Shown: positions 1 to 39,000 of the stretch, in pieces
How the letters are laid out: each line of letters begins with the position of its first letter
Numbering within the stretch: position 1 is the stretch's first letter
Assembly: GCA_965202585.1 (NCBI GenBank)
Contig: OZ241832.1
Location: forward strand, 51,894,001 to 51,958,000
DNA length: 64,000 nucleotides
Reading direction: 5' to 3'
Source: Thalia democratica
Lineage: Eukaryota
The notes under the pieces: generated by a model
Database searches by the model: none
What the model was told of the DNA's origin: nothing
The model's input: the letters and a program-made list of their open reading frames with translations, nothing else
Made by a program: the position numbers and the translations under genes

Positions 1-3000
1 GAAGTTTTCTAGAATTATGTAATTAAAGCCACATTAGCATTTAATATTTCAGCTTTGTTCATAAATTCAACTACGAAATAGCTAAAAAGTTGAGCAAAAT
101 ACAAAACTGTAATTGTTTACACATACTGACTGTAAAATACAAATAATCGCAGAACTACGTATTTAAATGTTAAGTAATATAGTTCACTGAATCTAAAAAT
201 GTTGTTCAGTTCGACACAGCTTATGTTTTTTTATTATTCACGAAACAAAAAGTGATTAAAATCAGTTCGGAAACTAATATTTTTAACTGGCCACTTAAAA
301 TAGAAAGATTTTGATTTAGAACAGTTGTAAAAAATTTTTGAAATCTATCTTTAAGTAGACTTTTAACTGAAAAAAAAAAGAATCAGATACTGTCGAGTAA
401 CTTTTATGTATGAAATTTATAAACAAAATAGTTGATATTAATCAACTGTTTTATGATAGTAATATTTTTACTTGTTTGTAGAAAATCTACGATAAGCTTT
501 ACTTGACCTTTTTACTCTATGACGTTGGTTTTTGCTTAAACTTACTGTAAATCTTCCAGAAAATGCACTAGAGATGCTAATTAAATGGTTTGGTAAGACT
601 TTGAAAAAAAAAAACATTAGCATATTTTAACAGCTTATTATAAATGTAAAATTCAAAATAATTTTATTCTAACATGTATCAGAAATTGTTGTTGTTATGC
701 TATATGTAAATCTGATTGCAGCAAAGATTAATTTAGTTTATAATTACTAAAAATATTCTAATTAATTTAAGTTTCCTTTAGTTTAAAATAAAACTGTATA
801 CTCTTTTTCAATTAGTTTTTAAGAGTTTAAATAAAGTATTCTTGGTATATCTTTTATACTTTATCAACATGTCCAAAAAAGGAGCTTTAAAAAAAATAGA
901 AATAGAGAATATTTTAAGCAGTTTCAAAATAGTAATACTTAAAATAACTCTCTATGAAGTTTTATATTGTTTAAGTCATTTTACTAAATATAAAAAAATT
1001 TTAAGCCAAATTAGCTGTAAGTAAGACACGCAAATTTATTAAAAAATGTGTAAAAAAATAGTTAGTGTATTAATGTCTACAAAATGCCAGTAGATTACTT
1101 ATATTCACAAAAATTTACAGTTTTGTCACATGTTAGTAATACTGTTGTTTGTGAAACATCTTTCTTAAATAATGTTTCTTTAAAGAAATAATTACGAGAT
1201 TAAAAGCTAATTTAGTAATTTTAAAGATATTTAACCATCTTTTGATATTTAACTAAAGAGAAGTAAGAGAATGGTTTAAAGTTTTAAAGAAATAGTTCTT
1301 AAGGCTATTACTTTAGTTTTATTATGTTTTATTCATGTTTTTAAAAAAATTCGTAAAAAAATTGTTTGTTTCAGTTTTTTTTTAATTTAATTCATAGAAT
1401 GCTGTATTGATTTTAGTTTAAAAATTTTGTACACATTTTTTTCTCTTTTCAAAGTTTTTACTTTTCTTCAAAAATATATCATAATTATAAGATGATAAAT
1501 ATCTTATAAATTTAAATGATTTCCTAGGACTTGGAAGACTTTTTAAATTACAAAAATGAATTTCTAAAAAATTTATTATTTGACTAAAAATATATAGATA
1601 ATTTACTATTAGATTGTTAAACTGTTTTCTTTAGTTAAACCCAGAAAACACTTTATTTTTCCAACTGACTCTAGGCTAGTTAAATTTTATTACTTGAATG
1701 ACAGAAAAAATTACAAATTTTAAGTAAATTTAAGAACTAGGCATTATTTTCTTTAAGAAACTAACGGAATAAATGCAGCTCTAAAAACAAGACAGTATGT
1801 GAAGTAAATAATTTTTACAATACAAGCTTTAATAAATATATATATAAGTAAAATATTTTTATCAATACATCACCGGTTTTAAAAGTATGTCGGTTAGAAA
1901 AATAAGTTAGCTTGAGAAACTGTTAAAAATGATGTGTTTTTAATACTTGCTTTTCTTATTAAACTAGTTTATAATTTTTGCTGGTTTTAAAGTATTTTCA
2001 TAAAACTAGTCTCATATAGTTTCATACTACGAACATTTTTTAATGATAGTACCAATTACAATATAGACTTTCTTAGTGCTACATTGCTTTCACTAATTTA
2101 AGTAAACTGCCTATAAAAAATTAACTTTAGTAAATGTTTTTTTTTATCAATAAATATCTATGTATATGTAAATTTTTAGACTATTTTACCGTAACAGTTT
2201 AAAAAAAACTAAAAAAAAAATTTAGACATCGTTATATAAACTAAAAAAATATATTTCATTATTACCAATGCAGTTTGTTTTTAGTAAAAGTAGTATCTAA
2301 AATAATTAAGTTGCCTAGTATTAAAGAATACCTAGTATTAACTACAATTTACCAAAAAGCTTTTATTTTTATTTGTTACAAAACTGTAGAAATGGGTATA
2401 ATGAAATGTATGAAAAAGAATAAAAAGGACAAAAACTTCATCTTCGACGTCGAAAGCGTGATTGAGCGTCTTTTGAAGCCGGCAGACATGAAGCGGAAAT
2501 GCGGAGTGAAAAAGCGGCTGAAAGTGACCGAGTTGGAAATTGAAGTCATGTGCAAAAAGGTCAGCAACATCCTGATTGGCCAGCCCATGCTGCTCGAGCT
2601 AGAATCCCCCGTGAACGTCTGCGGCGACATCCACGGCCAGTTTAATGATCTGAAGAAGCTCTTCTCGGTCGGAGGGTATCCCCCTTTTCGAAACTACCTC
2701 TTTTTGGGGGATTACGTCGACCGGGGCAAGAACTCGGTCGAAACTTTACTATTATTGATGGCATTCAAAATAAAATTTCCCAAAAATTTTTTCGTCATCA
2801 GGGGCAACCACGAGAGCGATGACGTCAACAAAAGCTACGGCTTCTACGACGAGTGCAAGCGTAAGTACAGCGCAAAAGCGTGGAGAAACTTCAACGACGT
2901 GTTCCGCTGCCTGCCCGTGGCTGCCGTCGTCGCGGGAAAAATATTCTGCTGCCACGGAGGGATTTCCCCCCATCTCGAAACACTCGACCAGATCAGGCAC

Positions 3001-3800
3001 ATCGGCCGGCCGTGCGGCGTGCCGCCGGAAGGCGTGATGAGCGACCTCTTGTGGGCGGATCCCGGCCAACTCGACGGTTTCGTGCCAAATAAAATTCGCG
3101 GGCGTTCGTTCACGTTCGGTACGAGGCAGTTGGAGGAATTTTTGGAGAAGTTCGACTTGGACCTGCTTGTCAGAGGTCACGAGGTTGAGGACTCAGGATT
3201 CAGGTTGTTTGCGGGCGAAAAGGGCGTGACCGTGTTTTCCGCCCCCAACTACTGCGGTTGCCGCGGCAACCGCGGGGCCTTCATGATTGTCGACGAGGAA
3301 TTGAGGTGCCGGTTTAAAATATTTGAATCGGAAGTAAAAACAAAGTAAAAATAGTTTTTATTCGGAGCTTAAAAGTTTTTCTTCTAATTCTATTTCTTTG
3401 TTTAAAATTTTTTAGATGTTTTTAAAAATTAATTTAAAACAATGAACTTAGAAATAAGTGCTACTTATATTTTTGTAAGGCAAAACTTCTAGATCATTAA
3501 TAAATAAAAAATTTAACGTTTTACAATATATGTTTTTTCTTATTTAATTAAAAAAATGAATTTTGTTTTCATATATATATTTTTTTTTAATTGCATCAGA
3601 TAAATTAATATTTTTTTAAAAAAATTTATTTTGTTTTTTAATTAATAGTATATAAATACATCAACATATAAGCTTTTAAGTATTGTAGTGCTGAAGTGAT
3701 TACACAACAACGGTTCTTTAGTCATGTGTTTGAATATTTAGTACTTTTTTTTTCTATTAATAAAATAAATTTTATTAACTTATTTGCTAAAATCTAAGAT
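1..3800. repeat. Left arm of an inverted segmental duplication (partner about 15950-23500)
   Basis: Manual alignment. 1-300 matches the reverse complement of about 23231-23500. 300-565 matches rc of 17175-17444 (e.g. tgttttatgatagtaata vs tgttttataatagtaata). 2746-3348 matches rc of the PP1 pseudogene. 3440-3530 matches rc of about 16400-16560. The outer ends are approximate. Confidence 0.8.
2392..3348 (+). CDS. Intronless divergent serine/threonine protein phosphatase PP1-like catalytic subunit (probable retrogene)
   Basis: Continuous ORF with the PPP motifs GDIHG, GDYVDRG, RGNHE, HGG, RGHE and SAPNYCG. The first ATG is at 2392 (the track's 2275 start is a TTG). There are no introns, unlike the neighbouring genes, and no C-terminal TPPR tail. 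Confidence 0.93.
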   Translation: MGIMKCMKKNKKDKNFIFDVESVIERLLKPADMKRKCGVKKRLKVTELEIEVMCKKVSNILIGQPMLLELESPVNVCGDIHGQFNDLKKLFSVGGYPPFRNYLFLGDYVDRGKNSVETLLLLMAFKIKFPKNFFVIRGNHESDDVNKSYGFYDECKRKYSAKAWRNFNDVFRCLPVAAVVAGKIFCCHGGISPHLETLDQIRHIGRPCGVPPEGVMSDLLWADPGQLDGFVPNKIRGRSFTFGTRQLEEFLEKFDLDLLVRGHEVEDSGFRLFAGEKGVTVFSAPNYCGCRGNRGAFMIVDEELRCRFKIFESEVKTK

Positions 3801-7038: not shown

Positions 7039-9262
7039 ATTCGGTGCTAAAATTTCTGCAAAATAAATTGAATATTGATTTGACAAATATACTGAAACAT
7101 AAAACTAACGTTTTAATAACTCATTTTTTCAAAAGAGCACAGTTTTTCTTACACTATGAATGAAACAAATGTAAGAAGTGTATAATATCTAACTATTTGA
7201 TCGAAAAAATAAAAAGTGAACAGAAAATTATACTCTCTAATAATAGTAATGTTGCGCGTATCTAAGACTTAACATCCCTTGTTTTTATTACACTATGCAG
7301 GTCCAAAGCAATTTTACATGAAAACACACGAAAAACGTGCGCCACACTCACATGGTCTGATTTTGTGATCAGTTGAATATCTTATAAACATGCCGTGGTT
7401 TGTTTTTCCTCTGCTTCTCTCTTGGCGGTTTAATTCAACTTCTTATAAACAATAAGCTGTTCGATTTAAACTTTCGCGTTTTAATCAAGTTTATTGATGA
7501 GCTTTGTGGTTAAAATAAAAGTTACTGATGAATTATTTAAATAACTTTTTCAAGTTCATTGATACATTTTTCAAGCCTTTGTAGACCCTTGTTTACCACA
7601 CCAAAACATTTATTTTGTTTAAGTTGTTATTAAAAAAAGTTAAGTTAACTAGCTTTTTTGATTCTTGAATTAGAAATCGTGAAGTATTTAACAAGCACAT
7701 TATTTTTTTTCAGTAAACGAAATAATTTACTATTATTTACTACTGAATAAAAATACATTTTTTACATTAGTTATTTTTTAATGTTTTTGTTTTTGCAATA
7801 ACAATATTGAAAAACTATAGTAAAACTTTTTTATTACCAGCTAATTTTAAATTATTTGCATTATATAAAAAAGATTTTAACAATAATCTACGTGAAACTT
7901 TACACCATATGCAAAAGAATATTTAGAAAAAAAGGTTTTAACTCTGAAAATACTATCAGTATTTTTTTACGATAGATTTACGTATAACATATGTTATTGT
8001 ATTTGAAATTTAGTTGGTAATAAAATGTATAAAATAAACTACAAAGTGAAGATCGTACTTAATCTTTACAAGATAAAGTACTTCTAAACGGGAAACAAAA
8101 TTCTTTATGTTTTTCCGTTTGTTAAACTTACTTAAAATAAAATTCACAAAATTCAAAGTTACCATTGTTGAACTTAAAAGAATTAAAAAATGTGATAGTC
8201 ATCCAAACTATAATAACATTTTCTATAAACTTGTAGGGTTACTAAATGTGATTGAAATAGTTTTTTGTACTTTTAAAAACTGTAACTAAATCAAATAAAA
8301 CAAGAGACTGTGGTTTATATGAAAATATATAAAATATATAACTACATTAAAAAAAAATAACTTGCAGATAAACTTAAAAAACTGACTTAATTTCGTTTTT
8401 GGTAGATCTAATGTATGTTTTATTATGAATTTACAGCTTATATTTTTAAATGTTCTAAATTAAGTTCGACTCTATTTAAGTAACTTTTTTTTAATGTGAG
8501 CTCTATTTGAGGAAAAAGCTATAGAATCTTATTTTGCTGAAAGTTCTTTCACAAATTTTCTAAACTATTGTAATATAGTACTTTAATTTCGTTCTATTAA
8601 AACCCTAGTCGCTTTGAGTAAAAATCTTATTCCAAACTAAATAACTAAAAAATGTAACTTTATTTGTTTTAATGTCTTAAACAATTGATTTTTTATACCA
8701 AAGTAATCTTTTAACATGTTTAGTTTTGAACAACTAAAAACATTTTTTGCGGTTAAACACAAATCTTAAACTTATTTTAAACGATACTTTGTTCTGTACC
8801 TTAATTTAGTTTTACCAACTGCACTCAATCTTTATATTAATTTAGAGAATTAGGACCTACAAAAAAAATTTCTTAACTATTGAATATATTTAGTTTTTAA
8901 CATATCATCAATAGTAGACAGTACTAATAATCTTAGACAAAAATACATCAAACCAAGGATGAAGTTTATCTTTATAAAACTTACTCATATGCGGTTTTAA
9001 GATATTATTTTTTTCTGTAGGTTTTAAATCTAAAATTCTAATTAGTTTTTATGTTGCTCCTTGTGTTCAAGAATACTATATTTATACAAATGCTTAGGAG
9101 TATTTCTACTTGCGCATTAAATTCTAATTTATCACCTAGCCTAAGGCTACGCTGCCATACAAAGAATACTGACATTGAAAATTACTTTGAAGCAAAAGCA
9201 AAGTTGTGAACTAAGTTTTATTTTGAAACAAGATTTCAAACATTATTGATAAAGATGCAAGC

Positions 9263-12200
9263 ATGAAATACATTTTGGTGATAGTTTCAGTTTTAATTAT
9301 TAAATGCACTGCTTCAGAAAAGAAAGATGTATCCTTTCTGAATTTAAACTACGTTGAAAATGTAAAGTATTCAGCTGGAAACTCTTGGAAAGATGGTTTT
9401 AGTGTAAGTTTTTTTTTTCATACATTATAAAAAGTTTGTTTAAAAACATTAAGTAACTTATTATTTATTTTTACTTACGTTTGTTTTTTTTTATTGAACT
9501 TAGTTAAAGAAAAATTAAACCAAGTCTTTCAACTTTAATCAACTATTTTGTATTAGTTATAGCTGTATTCGAAGTTTTTGAGGTTAGGTAACAAAAACTA
9601 AAATAGTTTAAATTAACTAAAAGTCTTTTTTATCATTAATTTAATTTACAAAAATATTTTGATAAAATCAGGCTAAAACTTTTAATTTGAACTTAAGTTT
9701 ATTTTCTTTTAACTTTTATGCAAGTTTTAAACTTAGTAAAGTTGTTTTAGTGAACTTTTTTGCCGTTAGTCAAAATGTGTTCGAAAAGGTAAAGTTGAGC
9801 AGATTATTTTTAAGTTTAGCTTGTTGAGTACTTGTATATCATAAAAAATTTAGTGCAGTTAATGATAAAACCTACTAAAGTTTATAGACAGTTTCATAGC
9901 AAGACTTTGATAATTGAAAATTAAATTTAGTTACATATAAATTAACCAAACATATTCCAACAACTGTTTTTTTTACAAATCTTTACTTGTATAACATTTT
10001 ATTTTAAGTGTTTTGAAAAATAATTCTAAAAACTTTAAACGACATATAAAATTATTTCAAACAAGTAATTTTAAAACATTCAAAACAGGGTCAGCTTGAG
10101 TTTACATTGACAAGGACTGTATTCTACTGGACAATCACTTTCATATACGAAGGTCAACTATCAGATTTGAACGTGAGTTTTAACAACAAAAACTTTCGGT
10201 TAAGTTCAAAAAAATTTGAGTCAATCTGAGAAAAACCTTGTGGTTTTCAAAGAAGTAATCTCGTAATGACGTGTGAAAGTGCAAAAGTTTTGCGTTAATC
10301 CTCTGTAATTTTTATACTTTTACGTACTTTTTAAGATTGAATTAAAGTGATGATCAGTGATTAACTGCATGTGTTTAAGGATGTTTATGTTAATCTTGAA
10401 ACTTAATTTACATAAGTAAAATAAACTGTGAAACTGAGTTTAAAAAACAAAAAGTTTAAGTTTAAGAAATTAATGTACTTTTGCCTACAATTTAAAATTG
10501 TCAACAGATTACAAAACTTAGCTTGATAAACATACATCTTTGCTGTATTTTAAAAGTTTTAAGTGTGATAAAAGCATAAAATTCAGAATAAAACACATTC
10601 TTACACAATTATATAAAATATACAAATATCAAGCTGTACTACTATAACTATACAACTACTTTTTACTGTTGGCCTATATAGGATTCTCAGGATTTTCCAG
10701 TGTTTTTATACATTTAATAAGTCTTACTTACCATGTTGAGAAAGTACCACTTTTTTTAGTCATTACTTTTACAAAATTAAATCATTTTTTAACATTTTAT
10801 GCTTACAGACTTTGATACTTTAAAATAGCTCAATGATTTTATGATTTTTTAATTGTTTGTTTATTAACAAAACTTTACTTATAACCATTCGCTGTTATAC
10901 TAATCTTTTGTAGATTATACTTAATTTTTTTTTTCTTATCTTTAATAATTATCATTACAGTTTTACAATGGAGACATTCAAACCATCAGCGCTGGGCTCG
11001 GAAGTTCCGAGTTTCACTTCAAAAACAAGGAGTACAACGGAAGACTCGAAAAAGGTTCAACCCAAAAGGTTTTATTCCAAAAAAATCATTCATTACTGTA
11101 AAAAAATAATCTTATTACCTTACAACTAAATTACGTTAGAATATATGTATGACAAAAAATTTGGAAATAAAAAGCTATAAAAACTAAAAAAATTAGTTTG
11201 ACTTCATGGGTCTATTTCCTGCCGACGGTTCGGACAATCCCACGGTGCCTCCTGTGGAGATCTGGTTCCGAGGCAAGGTCATCTACAGGGAAGGAGGAGT
11301 CGTGAGAACCACCCTGTCACCCGAGGTTACAAGGAGAACAACTGACATGCAATACGTGCTTGACCTGTTAGTTTGATTGAGCAAAGATTGCACACAAATG
11401 CATAGTTGGTTGAATAAGCAAGAAAGCATATGTTTTTATGCGTAGAGTGCGGTTTCTTAATATGAGATTGATCCTTTTTCCACATTTGCAGAAAAATAAA
11501 TCTATGATTTTAACGCACAGAATAAGGAACAACAAAATGCCAACCTTGCCCACCACGACGAAGGGAACAACGAAAAGGACCACAACAACGGAAGCTACAA
11601 CCGAAGCGACAACGACCACGACGGAGCGAGAAGAAAGAAGCAGCAGCACGATGTCTAGCGAGCAGATCAAGAAGCACCGTGAAGTCTGCAACGTCCTGAT
11701 AAAAGTGGCCAAGGCCGCAAACATTTCAATCAACTCGACGGTGCTCCAAAACTGCAACAAGAGCTTTGACGCGACAACATCGAACTCAACTGAAAACCAA
11801 GGAGGGGTTCAAACAACAACGACACCGAAAACGAAACCGACCACTTTAAAAACGACCACCACCCCTGAACCCAAGACCAGGCCGCCGTTTTGGGGCCCGT
11901 TCCAGTACAAGAACCTGGTGCTGGGGACGAGGTACAGCTACGAGCACGCCCTCCACCTGTCCTCCATGTTCTTCGAGGCGCAGAAGTCGGGAAGGCTGCC
12001 CAGGGACAACAGGATCGCGTGGCGGGGAAACTCGGCGCTGAGGGACAAGGCGGGGGGAGGGCAGAGTTTAGTGGGTGAGTGCTTTTAATTAAAATATTTT
12101 TTATTTAGATATCCAAACATAGAAAATATCGAAAAATATTTTTGATGTTGTTATAAAAATGCGCGTTTCTTCATCGTCCACGTTTTATACTTTTTTGGTA

Positions 12201-15200
12201 CTAAGACAAAAAAATTCAGTTCAGAGTCTTGTGGGTTAGTGTTTGAAAATAAAATTAAAAAGATATTTTCACACCTCTGCTTAATTTTTAGCCTGATATA
12301 GAAGAATGATATTTTGCTTTTTAAATATTCAATTTAAGGAAGTTTTGCTTAAAGTTTTGTAAATTTTTCATCTTAAATGTGTATATTAAAATTATTATTA
12401 TTCTATTAATACTTGTTTATTTGCTTTAGAAATAGCAACTTGCTATTTTTTAAAGGTGGATTCTACGACGCGGGGGACACTATCAAGTTCGGGTTTCCGA
12501 TGGCGTTTTCGATGACGATGCTGGCGTGGGGCGGGATCGAGTTCTTCGATGTTTACAAGCAGACGGACGAGCTGCAGTTCCTGATGAAGAACCTGGTGTG
12601 GGGGTCCCACTACATCACAAAGTGCCACACTTCCAAATATGAGTTTTACGCCCAAGTTTGTTTTGTTAAACTGATATTTTTTAATTAACACAAAAATTGC
12701 GAACATAATCATAAAGTTACAAAACAAGCTATAAGACTCTTCGTAACTAAACGCGTGTTGTTTGTTATAAAAATTTTTGTAAAAAAAAATTTTTTTTTAA
12801 TAGTTTTCGTGTAACTCAGGTTGGCGACCCGGAAAAAGAGCACAAAGACTGGGACCGGCCGGAAGACGTGCCGCACAACCGACCAGCGTTCAAAGTGACG
12901 GCCAAAAAACCGGGAAGCGATCTGGTGTTTGAGGCATCAGCGGCGTTGTACGCTACATCCATACTGTTCAATAAAATTTATAACAGTCAGTCTTGTTTAT
13001 GTCATAGCATAAAACTTGAGTACAATTTCTCTAAATGTGTTTTAGTACATGCACTTGTAGTATACTACTCAAAGAAACTTGTAATAGATAGTTTAAGATT
13101 GCTAAAAAAAAGTTTCATAATAAAAAAAAAGACTTTTAACTTTTTTTTAAACTAGTGTTGATATTTATAAGATTGTATATAAAAGAACAGATGTTTAAAA
13201 CTATATAACATATATAATAATGATTTTCAGAAACCACCCAGTACGAAGAAATGCTGAAAAAGCACGCCTTCGAGCTGATGGAGTTCGGGGAAGCCCACCA
13301 GGGATTGTACCACTTTGCCGTGCCACTGGCGAAAGATTGGTACAAGTCGACCGGGTACAAGGACGAATACGTGTGGGCAAAACTGTGGCAGTACAGGGCC
13401 ACCGGAAACAAAACTCATTATGATAAGGTACATGGGTTTTATGATGCGTTTGATTTTGAATTGAGAATTATTTTTTTCAATTTTTATCTACAATTAAAAA
13501 AAAATATTTTCAATTGTTTTAACCAAAAAAAAGAGTGGTTTGTAAGTTATTTTATATGTGCATTGTTAAAATATTTTTGCATTGAAATTCTAACATTTTC
13601 AATTTTTACACGACATTTATTAATACATTTTTTTACTTGAATCTCATCAGATAACAATCATAATAATTTGTATTTGAGTTGTGAAATATTTCTTAATATA
13701 AGCAAATTAATGCTTCAATTAGCAGACTTAGTTGTAGTTTTAGATATTTAGTTGCAATTTTAATACTTTTATAAGGATAAAAGCAGACGATAGTTAGATT
13801 TTAGAGCACTGGATATCTGTTATAGTTGTTATTATCAAAAACAGTTGTTTTTAAATACATATTTTCAATTTTCAAATTCTAAAATTAATATAGCAACAAA
13901 TAAAACTCTTTATAATGTTATTTTTCAGGCTATTGGAATGTACTACAACTGGGGTTTGTTCAAGCAAAACAACAAGTGGTTTTCGTGGGATGACAAAACT
14001 AATGGCCTGCAAATGCTGATTGCTCAAGTTAGTTTGTTTGTAAACATTCAAAAGTGTTGTTGTTAGTACCAGGAGCGTAACTTGAATAAATTTTTTATGA
14101 AAAAAGCGACAAAAGAACGCAAATAACGTACGACGCTTAGTACCAACTAGAACCTGAGTAACTTTCAAAATTTCCTTTGAAACTTTTCAGTTTTGAAAAA
14201 CGGAAAAAAATTACGCAGGATTTAACAATTCAAAATAAGACTAAACATTTGTTTGTAGTTTTAACATTCTCATAAAAAAACTATGCTTTGCAAATATAAC
14301 TCTAAAACATTTTTTGTATTTAATGTAATAAAATTTGAACTTTTTATTTAGTTTTTTGCATTTTAACAACTTCAGTTAGAGTTGACGTAGTTATAATTAA
14401 GTTGTGAGAACAAAAATTCATTCTATCTCAAAATGTATCAAAATACTATTTTCAAAGATAGGAAACAAGCATAAAAAAGGAGCTGAAGAAACAATTGAAA
14501 ATTATTGTAAAAGTCTTAATTTAAAAGAAAGAAAAACGAAAAAAGGACTTTTGTTCTTAAATGAATGGGCTCCATTGCGCTATTCAGGTAGCTACATTTT
14601 GTGAAGATAAATTTTATTTTAACTTAGTTTTAATTTAAACACAAATCTAAAACATAATAGATAAGTTGATATTATATATTTACTTACTATGTACTTATTG
14701 ATTTTTAACATCTATTTTAGCTTAGTCGTCTATCTGATGGCCAGAATAAAATAGCCATTATAAAAAGTCGACGAAACATCAATTTGTTAAACTTTCAACA
14801 GTTCCAACTACTTTTCTTTATTATTTAACAGCAAACGCCGCACTCATCTGTGTGATGGCCGCGCTTGAGGGAGTCAACTTTGATGAGAACATCGAGTTTT
14901 CAACCGAGCAACTGGACTACATGCTCGGCAGCTCGGGTAGGAGCTATGTGGTGGGTTTCGGTAAAAACTACCCGAAAAGACCTCATCACCGGGGAAGCAC
15001 ATGCCCTAACGTGAAACAACGGTCAGCAATGTGAAGCGTTGTTATCAACTTAACATTTTTTATACTAAAGTCACCACGTTAGCGAAAATAAACGTCCTCT
15101 TACATATTTTTGTTGACTTTTATTTGATTCCAATAATCGTCAAAACATTATTACTGAAGTATGTTAAAAGCTTAAATATTTTTTCAATTACTTATCAAAA

Positions 15201-15865
15201 ATGTAGTTGTTCGTGGGATGTGTTCAACTCGAAAATTCCGAACCACAACGTTTTGTACGGAGCGCTGGTGGGAGGTCCTAATGATCAGGACGTTTTTGAT
15301 GACGACAGGAGAAATTTCAAGCAGAATGAAGTGGCACTCGATTACAATGCCGGTTTTCAGGTTAAATATCTTAAAATTTTAAACAAAAGTAATTATTATT
15401 TAAAAAACTTCTTGTAATTTTAAGTTGAGATGATATTTTTAAACAGCTTATTACTAAAAAATTTAAAAAATAAATGATCAAAAATGGATTATCTTTTAAT
15501 TTTTTGATTCAAAAACTAAACAATTATAATTAACTAGAGAATTTTAACTTTTCTTTTAAATCTTACCAGTTTTAAAATTCAAAACATAAAATGCTTGCAA
15601 CTTAGTTATTTTTTTATTCTAGGGACTGGTATCTGGAGTTTTACAAAATGCAATTTATTCTAAACTTGGTTTAAGCAAAGAAGAGAAAAAAGCGAAAACA
15701 ATTGAGAAAAGATCGAGGGAGGCTTGGTATAAGCATTACGAAGAGTATATAGAAGCTTACAATGAAGAAAACAATATTGAACCAGAGAACTCCGCACATT
15801 CAATCCATAACTTTTTCGTCGTTATATCGGCGGTTTTTATCACAACTTTAGGTCAATTTTTATAA
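9263..15865 (+). CDS. Endo-beta-1,4-glucanase (GH9) with signal peptide, CBM2-like module, Thr-rich linker and GPI-like tail; exons 9263-9403, 10089-10172, 10961-11068, 11197-11366, 11521-12074, 12456-12655, 12820-12985, 13231-13427, 13929-14027, 14458-14587, 14832-15021, 15207-15360, 15623-15865
   Basis: All 13 exons join with consistent phases. GH9 motifs: [17 protein letters not shown]-like segment ([17 protein letters not shown]), [41 protein letters not shown] and [11 protein letters not shown]. The N-terminal module reads SWKDGF...YWTITF...[12 protein letters not shown]. Confidence 0.9.
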
Positions 15866-16598
15866 ATGTTGTGCTTTTCTAAACTGATGATGCTGCTTCA
15901 TTTTTATTTTTATCTTTTTAAGATTAAATTAATCTTTTCACTGCTCTTTTACTATGCTTAAGTAACAATACTTTATTCTTTGAAATCTTAAAAACAAAAA
16001 AAAGTAGTTTCTATTAAAAGATGCTCAAACTAAAATCCTTGAAAGTGTAACTTCACTAAACTTTAAAAACAATAAAACATATTTATAAATACATACAATA
16101 TGAGTTATAAACTACTTATGCGTATGATATTCTTTATGTTGCTTTTCCTTTTAACACTTCTGAATTTTTTTAAAGGATAAACTTTGTGCAAGATTTTTTT
16201 TAATCAATTGTAGTTTTCAAAAGTTTATTAATATTTAGCTATCTTTGAAAGTTATTTTTTCCAAAGCTGAAATGAATATGAAAACGAGTTGACGATGTGT
16301 AAGTATTTGAGCAGTATATTAATTAAAAGGTATATAACAGATATTTCATTTATCACTAAAAAAGTAAGTTAATTTTATTCGAAAAAGAATTGTTTTACGT
16401 TAACCGTCTGTAAAACGTTAAATTAGTTATCATAAAAAAAAAACTTTTAATTATGGAGGAATAAACGTACAACTTTTGAATTACTAAAATAATAATATAC
16501 TTTAAAGGATTTAGAAGTTTTGCTTTACAAAAGTATAAGGAGCACTCATTTTAAGACTCACTTCATTAAAATTCAAGACTGTTAAAGTTTCTCAAACT

Positions 16599-17172
16599 TT
16601 AAAACCAATTATACTTTGTCTTTACCTCAAAAATAATAAACCGGCAACTCAACTCCTCGTCCCCAACCCCGCGGTTGCGGCGGGGACCGCAGTAGTTGGG
16701 GGAAGAAAACAAGGTCACGCCCTTACCACCTTTCGTCCCAACCTGAACCCCGAGTCCTTGACCTCGTGACCTCTGACCAGCAGGTCCAAGTCGAACTTCT
16801 CCAAAAACTCCTCCAACTGCCTCGTACCGAACGTGAACGAACGACCGCAAACTTTTTTTGGCACGAAACCGTCGAGTTCGTTTGGGCACGTACCCCTCCG
16901 GCGGCACGCCGCATGTGCCGAATCTGGTCAAAGTTTTTAAGGTAGGGGGAAATCCCTCCGTGGCAGCAGAATACTTTTCCCGCGACGACGGCAGCCACGG
17001 GCAGGCAGCGGAACACGTCGTTAAAGTTTCTCCACGCTTTTGCGCTGTACTTGCGCTTGCACTCGTCGTAGAAGCCGTAGCTTTTGTTGACGTCATCGCT
17101 CTCATGGTTGCCCCTGACGACGAAAATGTTTTCAGGAAACGTTATTTTGAAGGCCATTAGAAGTAATAAAGC
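16599..17172 (-). pseudogene. 5'-deleted, frameshifted copy of the PP1-like gene
   Basis: Highly similar to 2746-3348 (LMAF...RGNHESDDVNKSYGFYDECKRKY...SPNYCG). It has several short deletions that shift frame and lacks the GDIHG and GDYVDRG half. Confidence 0.92.
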
Positions 17173-18397: not shown

Positions 18398-21300
18398 TTG
18401 CAAACTTGTGATTGTATACCTATAACTCCTTCCCCTGATAGGCCAAAGGAGTTGCCATTTGCTTGCATTCCTGCAAATAATCAAAAGATGAGAGAATGGC
18501 TTTTAAATAGGTACGCATCATCTACATTTAATAAATGTACTCACCAACTGCTTCCAGAAATGACAGGTCCACCTTTGAAAATACATATTGACCAAGATGC
18601 CATTCCTAAAGCAATTCCAAAACATTGGGAAAATGAGGTGAAAGAAACTTTGGATAGGGATACTCGATTAGGTGTACTTGGTAAGACTCCAGTTGGTGTT
18701 CCGTCTACTTGGGTACATCGTATGTTTGTGGTTGCTAAAGCTGATGGTAGCTGTAGAAGAGTTGTTGACCTCTCACCTTTAAATAAGTATTGTGTACGAG
18801 AAACACATCATGTAAAGCCTCCATTCATTCAAATATGTGAAATTCCTGCAAATACTTGGAAAAGTGTGACCGATGCATGGAATGGGTTTCATTCAGTACC
18901 ACTTCGTCCAGAAGATCATCATCTCACAACATTTCTTACTCCATGGGGAAGGTACTACTACAAAGTAGCACCACAAGGTTATTTGGCAAGTGGAGATGCA
19001 TATACGCGCAGGTATGATGAAATTATAATACTTCAAACATTATCAGCTAATTCATATTTAATGCAAAAACAAATAAATAAAACACTCTCTCAAGTTTTTT
19101 TGTGATAGTTTATACGTATTACACTACTTTTCGTCAGAACTTAACAGTAGAACAATTCTAAAACTATGAATAAGTTTTTAAACAAAAACACAAAAAGTTA
19201 AAACTAACAAAGTAATAAGCACAATAAATAATCAGTGTAAAGTAATAAATAATTAAACTCAAATACTACTAACGGATAAAAAATAGATAATTTAACTAAA
19301 TAAAGACACTTTATAATCAAATTCCTTCTGTTTACACAGTTCTGGTTTCTCCAAAAATATAGAGATAGCCTCCAACTTCACGAGATCAAACACACTATTG
19401 CAATGATGGATTATTTTAAATCTGGATATGTCATATTTCCTAGCACAATCTCTATTATTTATTAGATGTTCTGCAACTGAAGATCTTTTTGCTGCGTTTT
19501 TTGTTGCTATTGTCTTTATTTCAGGTTCTTGTTCGATGAATTTCAATACACAAGCAGGTAGATGTTCTTTTATCCTGGTTTTTAAGTGCCTAGAGGTCTG
19601 CCCGATATAGCTCTTTTCGCAAGAGCAATTAAACTTGTATACTACACAACTTTTGTCTTTGTCTGGTATCGGGTACTTCAATTGCACTTTTATTAAAGAT
19701 TTTGAAAGAAATATAACTCTTGGAAGCACTTGATTGTAAGATGTTTTTGTTAAGTCTTTTAGTTTGCTCTCAAATACTCGTGATTTTTCTCCAATATAAG
19801 GTAGTTTTAATATTGCTGGGAACTTCTCCGGTCCAAATAGTCTAGGTTGATTTATGTTATTGTGGTGTGATTTTATCACCTTCTTAATCAGATCTGGTGG
19901 GTAACCATTTTTTATTAGAATTTCTTTTATTCTCTCAACCTCTGAATGAAGTAATTCTTTCGTTTTTGTTTAAAAACTTATTCATAGTTTTAGAATTGTT
20001 CTACTGTTAAGTTCTGACGAAAAGTAGTGTAATACGTATAAACTATCACAAAAAAACTTGAGAAATTATAATAGACATACCTAGAAAGACAAAATGCGTT
20101 GATGACACTGTTTTATGGGATGAGGAGTTGGCTGATCAATGGTGGCGTATGATTGACTATTTAGATTTAATGGGAAAAAATGGAGTTGTACTCAATCCTG
20201 AAAAGTTTCATTTTGCACAAAAACAAATAGATTTTGCTGGATTTACTATTACGAAATCTGAAATTAGGCCACAAAAAAAGTTCATAAATGCGATAAGAGA
20301 TTTTCCTATACCCAAGTCAATAACAGATGTGCGATCATGGTTTGGCTTAGTGCACCAAGTTTCACACTACAACCAATTGACTTCTTTGATGATTGTATTT
20401 AAGCCGTTATTAAGTCCAAAAACTAAATTTTACTGGAATGACGAGCTAGATGATACATTCTACAAATCAAGAGAAGCTATAGTTGCAGCCATAACAAAGG
20501 GAATACAAATTTTTGATTTGGGAAAGCCCACTTGTATACAGCCAGACTGGTCTACAACTGGTATTGGTTACTTTTTGTCGCAGAAACATTGCTCTTGTAA
20601 GTCTGCTGTGCCAGGATGTTGTCAAACTGGATGGCGTATTGTTTTAGCAGGCTCTCGCTTTCTTAGACCTTCTGAATCACGTTATGCTGCGGTAGAGGGA
20701 GAAAGCCTTGCAATTGTATGGGCACTTGAGCAATCACGGTATTTTACACAAGGATGTGATAATTTGTTGGTTCTGACTGATCACAAACCACTGGTTAAAT
20801 TATTTGGAGACACAACACTTGATGAGATTGCAAACCCCCGCTTTTTCCGGTTAAAGCAGAGAAGTCTTTTATGGCGATTCAAGATTCTACATAAACCTGG
20901 TAAACTACACCTTGCTCCAGATGCAATGTCACGTCATCCAGTGGAAACCATTCATAAAACAAAAGATGAAGTTGAGATAAGTACTTCTGAAATTTTAGCT
21001 GGAATACGTTTGCCAGACAGTGAGTGTATCATTGCAAGTAATCAAGTAGGTGACAATTTTCAAGCTGTGACTTTTGACCGAGTTAAAGAAGAAACTTTAA
21101 AAGATAAACAAATGATGAAGCTTATTCATTATGTTCAAGCTGGTTTTCCAGAGACCAAAGACCACCTACCATTAGAATTGCATGAGTTTTGGATAGCTCG
21201 CTATTCTTTGTTTATGATGGATGGGGTCATTATGTGTGGTGATCGTAAACGAGAACTTGATCATAATAAGCTTCTATCACCTAGCAGTATATTCCAGGAT

Positions 21301-22500
21301 GATGTGTATAGAATTGTTATTCCTCCGTCATTAAGAAAAGAGGTTTTAAGAGTGCTGCATTCTGCTCATCAAGGATTCACTGCAATGAACGAGTGAGCAA
21401 AATCGATTGTTTATTGGCCGGGAATAACAAATGACATTCAAGGTTGTCGAGAAAATTGCAATAGTTGTAACTTAATTGCACCAAGCAATCCTCGCCTACC
21501 TCCAATTGAACCATTGATTCCAAAGGTTCCTTTTGAGTCAATTGTTTGTGATTATTTTCATTTCAAAGGTAGGTATTATTTTGTAGCTGCCGACAGACTT
21601 TCAGGTTGGACAGAACAACAAAAAATCAAATTGGGTACAAATGATTCTGGTTCAAAAGGGCTGTGTAAAGCTTTGCGTCGTATTTTTGTGACTTTTGGTG
21701 TTTCAGTTGAAATATCTTCTGATGGAGGTCCAGAATTTTCTGCAAAAGTTACCAAAGATTTTCTGAAACGATGGGGTATACACCATCGTATGTCATCTGC
21801 ATATCATCCAGTGTCAAACGGTAGGGCGGAATTAGCAGTAAAGGCCTCTAAGCGATTGTTAATGGAGAATGTTAGTTCAAATGGTGAACTAAATAATGAC
21901 AAAATGGTACAAGCTTTACTTACGCAGAGAAACACGCCTGATCCAGGATGCAAACTATCACCTGCACAGATCCTTCTGGGACGAAATTTAAAGGACTCAT
22001 TGCCATACCTCAGGAAGAGTATTATGGCTTACAATAACCCGCAGATCTTAAACATTTGGCGTAACGCATGGAGTAAAAAGGAAGAAGCTCTTAGGTCTCG
22101 TTATGTTAAGTCTCTCGAAAATTTAAGTGAGCACACAAGATTGTTGCCACCACTGAATTGCGGTGATCATGTCATGATACAGAATCAAGCAGGTAACTTC
22201 CCTAACAAGTGGGGGAAAAGTGGTGTAGTAGTAGAGCTAAAAGACTATTATCAGTATGTTGTCAAGATTGATGGATCAGGTCGCTTAACTGTACGAAATC
22301 GAAAGTTTTTAAGAAAATTTAATCCTCCTGTTTGCAAATCTCAAAATAGTATCCCTTATCTTAAAAAAGCAAACATACCAATGCAGAAGTTTGTTTTTTC
22401 TGGCAACGATGAGAGAAAAGATTCCAAGGAAAGTTTTGACGGTGTGCGCTCCCAGAAAGGAATACGTTTCAAAGCTGGAGATAACTTTGACAAAATTTGA
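18398..22500 (+). pseudogene. Gypsy pol (RT, RNase H, integrase), interrupted
   Basis: RT motifs RRVVDLSPLN, DAWNGFHS and YYYKVAPQG are split from CVDD (about 20095) by the Penelope insert. RNase H: DWS...YAAVEGE...TDHKPL. Integrase: HSAHQG, a premature TGA at 21394-21396, then CDYF...SDGGPEF...SNGRAE. Confidence 0.92.
19031..20061 (-). mobile_element. 5'-truncated Penelope-like retroelement with GIY-YIG endonuclease and an inverted terminal repeat
   Basis: ORF 19292-19879 contains VVYKFNCSCEKSYIGQTSRHLKTRIKEH. A 102-bp inverted repeat spans 19088-19189 vs 19962-20063. The 12-bp TSD GAAATTATAATA lies at 19019-19030 and 20062-20073. Confidence 0.92.
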
Positions 22501-36000: not shown

Positions 36001-39000
36001 AAAGCTTATGTTTATATAGAAAAATTATTTCAATATGTTTTTTTACATTATCTGATTTAAAGAAAATATTTTAGTGTAAATGTTAGAATAATATTTATTA
36101 AAAACCTACTAAAAAAGTTTTTTCTTATAAAACCAAAAAACTTAAGGTAATAAAATTAATTAAAAAACAAAAGCATAAGTAATAACTACTATTCAATAAC
36201 CACCATTAAAATAAACACACACACTGCTGCTTATATTGCAATTCTCTATTGACACGGAAACTGCCTAAGGCAAATTCACAATAAGAACTAGTAGCTGTTA
36301 CAACAATCCTAGAAACCAATATATTTATATTCATTTTACACACTACTACGTGGCTATAGCAAGGAAATAAACAGCACGCTTGTCAGCTTGCCATTGTAAG
36401 TTGTCTGGTGGTCACCGTGGTTTTTCCAAAAGAAAAATGTTGGGTACCCTTTTACATGGAACCTCTTAACGGTTTTTGGGTTGGCATCACCATCAAGCTT
36501 TGCTAGTTTACAATCGGGTATGTCAGTAAGCAATTGAGTGGCTGCTTTTTTGTAATCCTTGTCCATGTGAATGCAGTGTGTGCACCATGGGGCGTCTGAA
36601 AATTAATTCAAATTTTAAACATGCATATTAGAACTATTATTTACCGCCGTATTCCTTGGCCTCTCCGTTCTTAAAGAACTTCAAAGTTGGGTATCCTCTG
36701 ACTTCGAACTTCTCAGCTGCCTTCTTGTGGATGGTGGCGTCAACTTTGGCCAGTTTGATTTCAGATTCTTCAGCAAGGAGGGCACCTGCAGCTTTGGCGT
36801 ATTCGGGAGCCAAGGCTTTGCAGTGGCCGCACCATGGGGCGTCTTAATTGTTTGATTGTTAAAATAAAAGTTCATTTTTTACATATTATAATTACATACA
36901 TAATAAAGTTAAATTTCATGGGGCGTCTTAATTGTTTGTCATGATTATTAATCAAGTTAATTATTAGTTACATAATAAGCTACATGATTAAGTTTTTAGC
37001 TTTTCAGAATAAAAAAAAATACAACAATTAATTGATTATAATTTAGTTTTGTTATCTTATTAAGTGAAAAAAAACATTTAATTGTATATAATTTTGTTTT
37101 GTTACTTTAATAAATTTTGATAGTAAAAAAAACAACATTTAATTGTTTTTCATTAAGCTCAGATAAGTATTTTATTATAAGTAATATTAAGTATTAATAT
37201 TAGTAACAAAGTACAACAATTAAATGTTTATAATTTAGTTTTGTTACTTTATTAAATTTTGATACTAAGAAAAAAATACACTCAATTATTTATAAGCTCA
37301 GATAAGTATTTAATTATAAATTACATTTTAAGCTTATAACCTAATTATAGGGATTAGTAATTGTATCCAACTTTAAAGATTAAGTTTCTAGAAAACTATA
37401 AATTTATGGAGTAAAACAAGACAATTTCAATTTTTGTATTAGCCAAGTTATGTTAATATAAGGTTTTATAACAGTTAACCCTAACCTAAAGTCAATTTTC
37501 ACAACTTAAGTTGTAAAACTTTTTTGAGCTTTTTAACTTACTCAGCTTTTTGGTTATTGAAAATTAAAAACATTACAAAAACTAACATTTTAAATATAGT
37601 CAACTAAGAATAATAACATGGTATTTTAAAATTTTAGTATGCCTGATTTTTTTTAACTTATGATAATAAAATTGTTTTAGCACTGCTTTTACGGCGTCAT
37701 GATTTTTTGCATTGTAAAAAATTGAATATTAAAATATAGTTACTTTTTTATACTGACTCCCAAAAAAATTTTTATTTTTGGAAAAACATTTAGTAAAAAA
37801 ATATTAAACTTTAAAAACAAAAGAAAGATTTAAAAATACTGGTTTCACCTTTTTGTAAATTATTTTATAAACTTGATTGCAAGCATATAATCTTACAACT
37901 TATCTAATAACTAAATTCATTGTCTTTCTTCTCTTCCTTTAGAATTTATTTAAAATATTTTTTTTATAAAAGTAGAAAATCTTTGCTAACTATTTTGAAG
38001 TTTATATATTCAAAAAGACTACTTTGGTAAACATACTTATTAATACTAAGAAAATAGGCTTCTGATGTTATGCTGCAAAATATACTAAAATGGCTGAACA
38101 CATTTTATCAATAATTAATTACTTCAAGAATACAACTATTGTATAAAACAAACTTCAAAATTTGTTAAGTTTTATAAGAAAATTATTTAATAAAAGAAAC
38201 AGTTTCTCAACAATTTTTTTATAATTGAAAAATATTTAAGTAATAAAAAGATAAGTAGTTATATAACATAAAACAGATTTCTGCACATTTATCATTGTGT
38301 TATTTTTATATCTTGATTAAAATTTTTAAACAAATCAAAATTCTTATTTTTCATTAATATCTTAACATGTCATACTTTCAACATATTATTAAATCTGTAG
38401 TGCATTTAAATGACAAATTTAACAGAAAATTTGAATAGAAAATATATATTAAACATTTAACAAAACAGCTTCAAATAAAACCAGCATTGAATTGACAAGA
38501 TACATTAAAAATTGAAAGGACTCATAAGTCAAAATTTAAGATATTATTTAAGATATATTATTTAATATTAGTTTGTGTTAAAACACATATGAATATTCAA
38601 ATTATATTAATTTTAAGACAAATAATAGTAAAAACCATTTTCTGAAAACTAAAATACTACTGTGGTAAAGTATTACTGAAATTATATTTAAATTTTTACT
38701 AAAACTTCAACTAAAACTGAATAAATTGAGGAATTTTAAAATGATCTTTAAAACTTTCAAATAAATAAACAAAAATAAAAACCAAAATGAATTAAACAAT
38801 GTGTTTGCAATCTGCTTATATATATTTCCTTTCTTAAATAGTCAGTTATATTCCTGACAAAACTATATAGCTTTTAATTTAACAATGAAAATTGTTTGTA
38901 AACTATTTGTTAGTTGATATTGATCAAACCCTAAACTTAATAAAAAAACAAAAACTGAATATACTATTATTTGGTAGTTGCATATATAAGTTAAACAAAA

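Follow-up and report, generated by a model that had tools for sequence, protein, structure and literature searches.

Does a cellulose-making animal hold a cellulase of the animal GH9 lineage at its cell surface? To our knowledge, cellulose is made by no animals other than tunicates, and little is known of how fibre length, crystallinity and the growth of the tunic are controlled in them. We addressed this question at a gene in a 64,000-nt stretch of Thalia democratica DNA (contig OZ241832.1, positions 51,894,001 to 51,958,000 of the forward strand; the whole stretch is called the window, and its first letter is position 1), which lies on a 67-Mb contig of an 802-Mb assembly. Window positions 9263-15865 (+) contain 13 exons with GT..AG at all borders and a single 2,436-nt open reading frame (ORF) of 811 residues, which encodes, in order, a signal peptide, a CBM2-type module, a Thr-rich linker, a GH9 domain, a charged helix, the triplet N-S-A, a spacer and a hydrophobic end. 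We read the locus as a tunicate gene that is intact and transcribed and encodes a catalytically competent GH9 endo-beta-1,4-glucanase. The reading that we favor, as probable though well short of certain, is an active GH9 cellulase with a CBM2 that is tethered to the cell surface through a signal of the glycosylphosphatidylinositol (GPI)-attachment type. Discussion of membrane-bound tunicate cellulases has so far been limited to the GH6 gene acquired by horizontal transfer, the knock-out of which has a weak phenotype, and the authors of that work are still seeking other epidermal cellulases (PMC10986139). Our literature search found no GPI-anchored GH9 described in any animal. With its active-type GH9 domain, CBM2 and predicted lipid-anchor signal, the window gene provides a concrete candidate for an epidermal cellulase.

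The start ATG lies at 9263 and the stop codon at 15863-15865. RNA evidence came from two runs (X1 and X2) of one marine metatranscriptome sample, whose contigs are ≈92-99% identical to the window. Nine of the 12 splice junctions were seen in these contigs (11366>11521, 12074>12456, 12655>12820, 12985>13231, 13427>13929, 14027>14458, 14587>14832, 15021>15207 and 15360>15623). The other three, between exons 1 and 2, 2 and 3, and 3 and 4, are implied: RNA depth is limited to exons, a loose end joined to 10089 in X1 and X2 contigs reads the 3' end of exon 1, and a continuous 448-nt RNA contig with its final 136 nt on exon 4 implies the joins of exons 2-3 and 3-4. RNA depth inside the introns was zero. 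An alternative junction between exons 4 and 5 (11325>11492) was rejected, because the RNA contigs back 11366>11521. An X1 contig splices exon 12 to exon 13 and runs past the stop codon to 16003, within a 3' untranslated region (UTR) placed at 15866-16076 (+) with AATAAA at 16071-16076. Since this contig spans 15360>15623 into the 3' UTR, the last exon is present in the mRNA, which answers the first refuting condition set in an earlier note on this DNA, a last exon missing from the mRNA. Moreover, the last exon was constitutively joined in all RNA contigs seen. Among the 40 coding differences listed between the RNA variant and the genome, 29 are synonymous and 11 non-synonymous, a pattern that indicates purifying selection. 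The exons (29-55% GC) are GC-rich relative to the very AT-rich introns (16-33% GC) in which they are set.

The GH9 domain is spread over the second half of the gene, all on the plus strand. The end of exon 5 (11521-12074; X1 contig) encodes the first ≈55 GH9 residues (GH9 profile positions 1-38), and exon 6 (12456-12655; Pfam E 1.3e-19) encodes DAGD (residues 357-360) at 12467-12478. These are followed by exons 7 (12820-12985) and 8 (13231-13427), both supported by Pfam and RNA contigs, exon 9 (13929-14027), fixed by RNA junctions on both sides, and exon 10 (14458-14587), which is low in GC (29%) and covered by RNA contigs. Exon 11 (14832-15021; Pfam) encodes PHHR (667-670) at 14981-14992, and exon 12 (15207-15360) encodes NEVALDY (720-726), with Glu721 (15328-15330) aligned with the catalytic acid of animal GH9 enzymes. 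Eight exon pieces matched Pfam Glyco_hydro_9 (PF00759) collinearly over profile positions 1-443 with E values of 1e-8 to 1e-19, all above the cut-off of 27.7 bits, and BLASTP gave 40-45% identity to animal GH9 enzymes over ≈440 residues. Exon 6 aligned without gaps to residues 52-117 of T. fusca E4 (1JS4) and 51-116 of termite NtEgl (1KS8), which places Asp357 and Asp360 on residues 54 and 57 of NtEgl and 55 and 58 of T. fusca E4. Exon 12 aligned to NtEgl 372-422, with Glu721 on residue 412. We take residues 54, 57 and 412 of NtEgl and 55 and 58 of T. fusca E4 to be the catalytic residues of the published structures. The domain is thus of the active type as predicted from these alignments, with the catalytic Asp/Asp/Glu in place, as the earlier note had read from the three motifs. 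The protein resembles the animal GH9 enzymes of termite (NtEgl, 1KS8), earthworm (3WC3) and polychaete (4ZG8) in GH9 fold, catalytic Asp/Asp/Glu, PHHR and signal peptide. It differs from animal GH9 enzymes in a Thr after DAGD, where His or Asn is usual, and in its linker.

The N-terminal part of the protein is encoded by exons 1 to 4, also on the plus strand. Exon 1 (9263-9403) contains the signal peptide (residues 1-18) and the start of the CBM2-like module. By inspection, the signal peptide consists of MK, 12 hydrophobic residues and C-T-A|S, and forms the strongest hydropathy peak of the protein, whose only other strongly hydrophobic stretch is the C-terminal tail. The module continues through exons 2 (10089-10172) and 3 (10961-11068), both supported by RNA contigs and by a CBM2 hidden Markov model (HMM), and ends in exon 4 (11197-11366), which also begins the linker and whose junction 11366>11521 is present in three RNA contigs. 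A Pfam search with the four separate CBM2 exon pieces gave no match, because the pieces are too short. By contrast, an HMM derived from eight Pfam-confirmed CBM_2 domains gave the joined residues 19-165 a score of 39.7 bits (E 2e-11), compared to at most 6.7 bits for 1000 shuffles. Among 150 GH9 relatives, the N-terminus matched only Pfam CBM_2 regions of other proteins. In the HMM alignment, W42, Y77 and Y99 occupy what we take to be the positions of the three binding-face Trp residues of CBM2a. The module has no Cys pair corresponding to the terminal disulfide of CBM2. Together with the GH9 matches and the tunicate host, the HMM score bears out the earlier description of the locus as an animal CBM2-GH9 gene. 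Barnacle P0144 and coral P0169 likewise combine an N-terminal CBM2 with GH9. Between the two domains lies a linker of ≈110 residues, in which two Thr-rich stretches encoded by exon 5 flank a short insert that contains two Cys residues and four N-glycosylation sequons. The linker is probably mucin-like and O-glycosylated, and such a Thr-rich linker with a Cys-pair insert sets the protein apart from other animal GH9 enzymes.

The feature that raises the question of tethering is exon 13 (15623-15865, +), which encodes the last GH9 helix, a 32-residue charged helix rich in Lys, Glu and Arg (residues 750-781; 15677-15772), a polar run with Pro, a candidate omega triplet N787-S-A (15788-15796) within ENSAHS (786-791), the 5-residue spacer HSIHN and the tail F794-L811 (15809-15862), which runs directly to the stop codon. 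The tail consists of 17-18 uncharged hydrophobic residues with a mean Kyte-Doolittle value of ≈2.1 and no cytosolic residue. AlphaFold2, run on the 80 last-exon residues as a single sequence, gave helices at positions 19-50 and 54-79 of this exon with a mean pLDDT of 78, in a model composed of the final GH9 helix, the 32-residue charged helix and a tail helix. This model and the hydropathy agree with the charged helical spacer, ENSAHS and hydrophobic end without a cytosolic tail that had been described for this exon. GPI precursors have an N-terminal signal, small omega residues, a polar spacer and a hydrophobic end (PMC6726743). The signal peptide, small-residue triplet, spacer and terminal hydrophobic stretch of the window protein correspond to this layout, and this correspondence, together with a rule-based scan, upholds the proposal that the tail is typical of a GPI signal.

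The scan for omega sites covered 205 GH9 proteins of at least 300 residues, including the window protein, and the last exon of a second host locus on C4 described below. It picked two dictyostelid enzymes, the window protein and the C4-locus exon, and the rule also flagged four GH9 proteins whose end is just the final helix of the domain. The small number picked among 205 proteins implies that a GPI-type tail is rare in the GH9 family. The dictyostelid enzymes, F4PK43 of Cavenderia fasciculata (P0082) and D3BQT6 of Heterostelium album (P0035), resemble the window protein in an active-type domain (NEVA.DYNA) and a GPI-type C-terminal signal, but they have a Ser/Thr-rich stalk instead of the charged helix and no N-terminal CBM2. 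Dictyostelids synthesize cellulose and would thus be a second cellulose-producing lineage in which GH9 appears to be tethered. Their tail is taken as convergent, because they lie far from the window gene in the tree.

If the favored reading is correct, the protein would enter the endoplasmic reticulum by its signal peptide, and the GPI transamidase would cleave near Asn787 and attach a GPI anchor, so that the enzyme would reside on the outer face of the plasma membrane. The charged helix, ≈5 nm long, would keep the enzyme off the membrane, and the CBM2 would reach outward on its linker to cellulose. Cellulose would then be cut beside the cell surface by an enzyme that does not diffuse away. 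The most plausible sites of such an activity are the tunic-secreting epidermis, where nascent tunic cellulose may be trimmed or remodeled, and the gut brush border, where algal cellulose may be digested; the two are equally compatible with the present evidence.

We next place the gene among its relatives. The host genome contains at least 12 GH9 loci. No ortholog of the window gene or of its tail was found in any collection searched, including the ascidian proteomes present in the databases. The closest matches of the window protein overall are generic GH9 enzymes of animals (40-45% identity). An exhaustive representative search with exon 8 reached 52% identity at best and gave no ortholog; the best match (P0001) comes from a contig of 522 bp, which would end before any last exon. 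Maximum-likelihood analysis placed the window gene on a long branch (1.01) and gave it no supported sister. The long branch, the generic best matches and a last exon without detectable homolog imply that the window gene is probably a lineage-specific or fast-evolving paralog. Neither the CBM2 part nor the tail had a copy in the ten paralog regions searched by tblastn with the whole protein, and in five paralogs (C2a, C2b, C10, C8a and C7) read-through after '...AVAG' gives AT-rich, intron-like sequence. The 80-residue last exon of the window protein is absent from all animal GH9 relatives retrieved.

Two further paralogs carry a CBM2 or CBM2-like region and lack the tail. C8b (G000:C8:47541235-47551800; L022, L032) has a GH9 domain ≈95% identical to that of P0086, a 769-residue JGI marine metatranscriptome protein with an active-type GH9 domain, no tail and a weak Pfam CBM_2 match below the cut-off (E 6.6e-5 to 6.7e-4). 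C8b, which itself has active-type motifs and no C-terminal extension, is the predicted untethered counterpart of the window gene. The C5 locus (G000:C5:32819200-32827800; L017) is 60-77% identical, exon by exon, to P0120, whose named full-length relatives (at least 97% query coverage) are all ascidian (Ciona, Phallusia and Clavelina, 47-52% identity); partial relatives are from Styela (68% coverage) and one coral protein (60% coverage). Members of this family (P0120, P0164-P0168, P0032 and P0170) combine a CBM2-like module, a thyroglobulin type-1 repeat and GH9 without a tail. The acid Glu is Gly (N-G-V-S) in the five members nearest P0120, including those of Ciona, Phallusia and Clavelina, and Ser or Ala in the P0032/Styela branch; in P0120, DAGD is altered to VSGD. 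By these residues, the C5/P0120 family is a conserved tunicate pseudo-enzyme. The lack of a tail in the CBM2-GH9 paralogs C8b/P0086 and C5/P0120 implies that the tail is a specific addition to the window gene.

The C4 locus (G000:C4:50433802-50445150; L023, L033) is a double GH9-like gene with its last exon at ≈L033:6945-7180. Its protein ends in DESSSRDLSPS-LLLVISVLFINVVLNF*, all in one exon, which reads as a textbook GPI-type signal. The two-domain build and a hydrophobic tail recur in Logan P0171, a transcript, and in Ciona intestinalis LOC100176349 (P0173); the tails of these two failed the strict GPI rule because of charged residues near the end. Neither domain retains the catalytic base or acid (DGAG/DGVS; E to S/R), and these proteins are therefore probably non-enzymatic. 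They may represent a conserved, surface-bound, cellulose-binding protein of tunicates, COBRA-like in idea. The hydrophobic tails of the C4 locus, P0171 and Ciona LOC100176349 raise the possibility that tunicates have GPI-type tails on GH9-fold proteins more than once. The window protein shares with this family a GH9-fold ectodomain, which in the double proteins is followed by a short Ser-rich stretch and the hydrophobic end. It differs in that theirs are two dead tandem domains without a CBM2, present in an ascidian and the host, whereas the window gene has no detected ortholog. This dead family with GPI-like tails, found in Ciona too, is a second candidate for a GH9-fold protein of the tunicate cell surface.

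Several points weigh against a GPI-tethered enzyme. The GPI call is a crude rule-based reading of the tail, and AlphaFold drew the tail, including the omega region, as one helix, which a membrane helix would fit too. The last exon is AT-biased, with 34% GC compared to 51-55% in the core exons, and AT-rich sequence tends toward hydrophobic codons. Conservation of the tail beyond very close relatives has no support from homologs, and the blank searches are weak: the 80-residue exon gave no candidate homolog in a 5.8-billion-protein collection and no true relative among 465 pattern matches in JGI metagenome contigs, both searches being restricted to matches of similar length, with the nearest records possibly left out. 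Only three of the coding differences listed fall in the last exon, too few for measuring selection on the tail. Finally, metatranscriptome contigs are evidence of presence and splicing, not of level or tissue.

Among the specific alternatives, a GPI-anchored enzyme of the gut brush border, which would act at the membrane on the cellulose of phytoplankton taken up as food, survives best, and we regard it as a tentative possibility. Microvillus digestive enzymes with transmembrane or GPI anchors are common in animals (PMC11083476, a general statement), a CBM2 would direct the enzyme to crystalline cellulose particles, and the window gene has no ortholog in ascidians, which make tunic cellulose too. 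A weak hint in the opposite direction comes from the promoter (≈23% GC), where an AP-2 (Tfap2)-consensus-like palindrome, GCCTAAGGC, is located at 9139-9147, 116 bp upstream of the ATG. The AP-2-like consensus occurs six times in the window compared to 0.73 expected. In Ciona, a Tfap2 site drives expression of CesA (PMC10334666), and by this analogy the site at 9139-9147 weakly hints at epidermal control. An identical 9-mer, GCCTAAGGC, is present at 36263 in unrelated sequence. If the gut placement is correct, this major ocean grazer would possess a digestive cellulase that, unusually, is bound to the membrane.

The epidermal placement, in its fullest form, is more doubtful. It would have the active, GPI-anchored CBM2-GH9 enzyme of a fast-growing pelagic tunicate trim or remodel nascent cellulose beside CesA terminal complexes, as an independent, lipid-anchored counterpart of KORRIGAN, the plant membrane-bound GH9 of the cellulose synthase complex (PMC10334666; class A is defined in PMC5977491). 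The likeness is that of a GH9 domain at the outer plasma-membrane face in an organism that makes cellulose there, which for the window protein is a prediction from sequence. KORRIGAN has type II topology, with a cytosolic tail at its N-terminus followed by a transmembrane helix, and lacks a CBM; in contrast, the window protein has a C-terminal GPI-type signal and an N-terminal CBM2. With a cleavable-type signal peptide and a CBM2 at its N-terminus, the window protein falls outside the KORRIGAN class, and in the tree its gene does not cluster with those of plants. The predicted topology is opposite, and the window gene is not a member of this class. The GH9 phylogeny suggested in the earlier note as a check thus gave neither a supported sister nor a grouping with plant GH9. 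Of its KORRIGAN analogy, the part that stood is that the host appears to make cellulose; the absence of an ascidian ortholog and the long, unsupported branch told against the rest and make a conserved core role in cellulose synthesis unlikely. The lack of ascidian orthologs weakens the KORRIGAN-style idea in the epidermis. If this idea were nevertheless true, the window protein, taken together with the dead double-GH9 protein and its GPI-type tail (a possible COBRA counterpart), would indicate a surface GH9-fold toolkit for animal cellulose deposition.

Two tunicate systems bear on the epidermal placement. The Gh6/GH6-1 protein is a transmembrane GH6 cellulase of the ascidian epidermis and a proposed modulator of tunic cellulose (PMC10986139, PMC10334666). 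Like it, the window protein would be a membrane-tethered candidate cellulase with its catalytic domain outside the cell. Gh6 was acquired from bacteria by horizontal gene transfer and has a transmembrane anchor and no CBM2, whereas the window gene belongs to an old animal GH9 lineage and has a GPI-type signal and a CBM2. In Oikopleura dioica, GH9 genes have expanded, some members are expressed in the cellulose-secreting house epithelium, and control of polymer length or fibre relaxation has been proposed; one member has an expansin domain, and no membrane anchor or CBM2 is mentioned (preprint 10.64898/2026.03.31.715263).

It is unlikely that the window gene encodes an ordinary secreted digestive cellulase, comparable to CBM2-GH9 enzymes of molluscs and arthropods, whose tail works inefficiently, is removed or is followed by rapid shedding, with the dibasic K-R-S-R of the helix as one possible site. 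Abalone HdEG66, a GH9 digestive cellulase found in our literature search, is presumably a secreted CBM2-GH9 enzyme of this kind in a mollusc. The general view is that GH9 enzymes of animals are digestive (PMC10334666), CBM2 and GH9 occur together in secreted-type proteins of the barnacle, the coral and the host's own C8b paralog, and the number of host GH9 loci and the lineage-specific, fast-evolving character of the window gene recall what is often seen in digestive enzyme families. These similarities do not account for a tail exon that is joined in every RNA contig seen, for the lack of such an extension in paralogs with C-termini known from transcripts, or for an added 80-residue exon that brings helix, omega site and tail together, which would be an improbable accident. 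Least probable is that the C-terminal stretch is a transmembrane helix of a type I protein without a cytosolic tail and without GPI exchange: the tail is predicted as a continuous helix of 18 residues with the hydropathy given above, but this reading is less likely because the stretch is short for a plasma-membrane helix, is rather polar (Ser, two Thr, Gly and Gln) and lacks flanking basic residues and any cytosolic residue, and a near-ideal N-S-A triplet stands 7 residues upstream of the tail, as in GPI precursors (PMC6726743).

The surface-tethered cellulase that we favor would act in a host that itself appears to make cellulose. A tandem array at G000:C7:49829061-49901809 (L036-L043) contains five GH6-profile matches with a WVKNPGESDG-type motif. 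Its last exons read …HDANVWVKNPGESDG… (E ≈0.3 genome-wide and 3e-4 to 1e-3 as single proteins), and an upstream exon reads …YVIDTGRNGG…. The array is probably an expanded GH6-1-type family. GH6 has been reported from tunicates and no other animals (PMC10334666). A candidate CesA locus at G000:C4:85542670-85555058 (minus strand; L045, L046) has two collinear weak matches to TIGR03030, the bacterial cellulose synthase profile, in exons that read VQTPQFF... (VQTPQFFYNVNPDED…) and …RWCKGNLQIF…. On the same C4 strand, 10 kb further downstream, there is a weak GH6 match, and the order GT2 then GH6 is that of tunicate CesA (PMC6523144). Pfam and PDB searches with the two single candidate CesA exons gave no match. 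Because the TIGR03030 matches are weak and the single-exon searches blank, this locus is a probable, not a proven, CesA. The GH6-like array, the probable CesA locus and the ascidian relatives of the C5 paralog agree with a tunicate host, which the earlier note had only entertained. A search of the host genome for CesA with PF03552 found nothing. Two other matches in the CesA search were rejected, one to PF13632 as a chitin synthase (QRRRW type) and one to PF13641 as a small intronless GT2. An animal-type chitin synthase exon set, reading …CSPGCFSMFR… and …EFYNQRRR…, is present at G000:C5:49110495-49110800 (L034).

Two observations concern the gene as a whole. Its GC content is a mosaic, in which exons 4-8 and 11 have 51-55% GC and exons 1, 10 and 13 have 29-34%, nearer to the introns; these low-GC exons encode the signal peptide, a surface segment and the tail. 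Differences from the window are also common to the metatranscriptome variant and the DNA of 'organism B' (runs X1, X2 and X5; window 10050-16049), for example at 10133, 11799, 11890, 13268, 13270, 15303, 15309, 15658 and 15718. These shared differences imply that the RNA is probably from a population closer to organism B than to the assembled individual.

Elsewhere in the window, an intronless ORF at 2275-3348 (+) upstream of the cellulase gene encodes a PP1-type Ser/Thr phosphatase (Metallophos E 1e-45, STPPase_N). Directly downstream of the cellulase gene, at 16599-17157 (-), lies a partial copy of a PP1-type phosphatase gene with a broken frame. Retrotransposon pol remnants follow at 18398-22500 (+), with RVT_1, RT_RNaseH and an integrase core in three separate ORFs, and are interrupted by an opposite-strand ORF at 19292-19879 (-) that has a weak GIY-YIG match.

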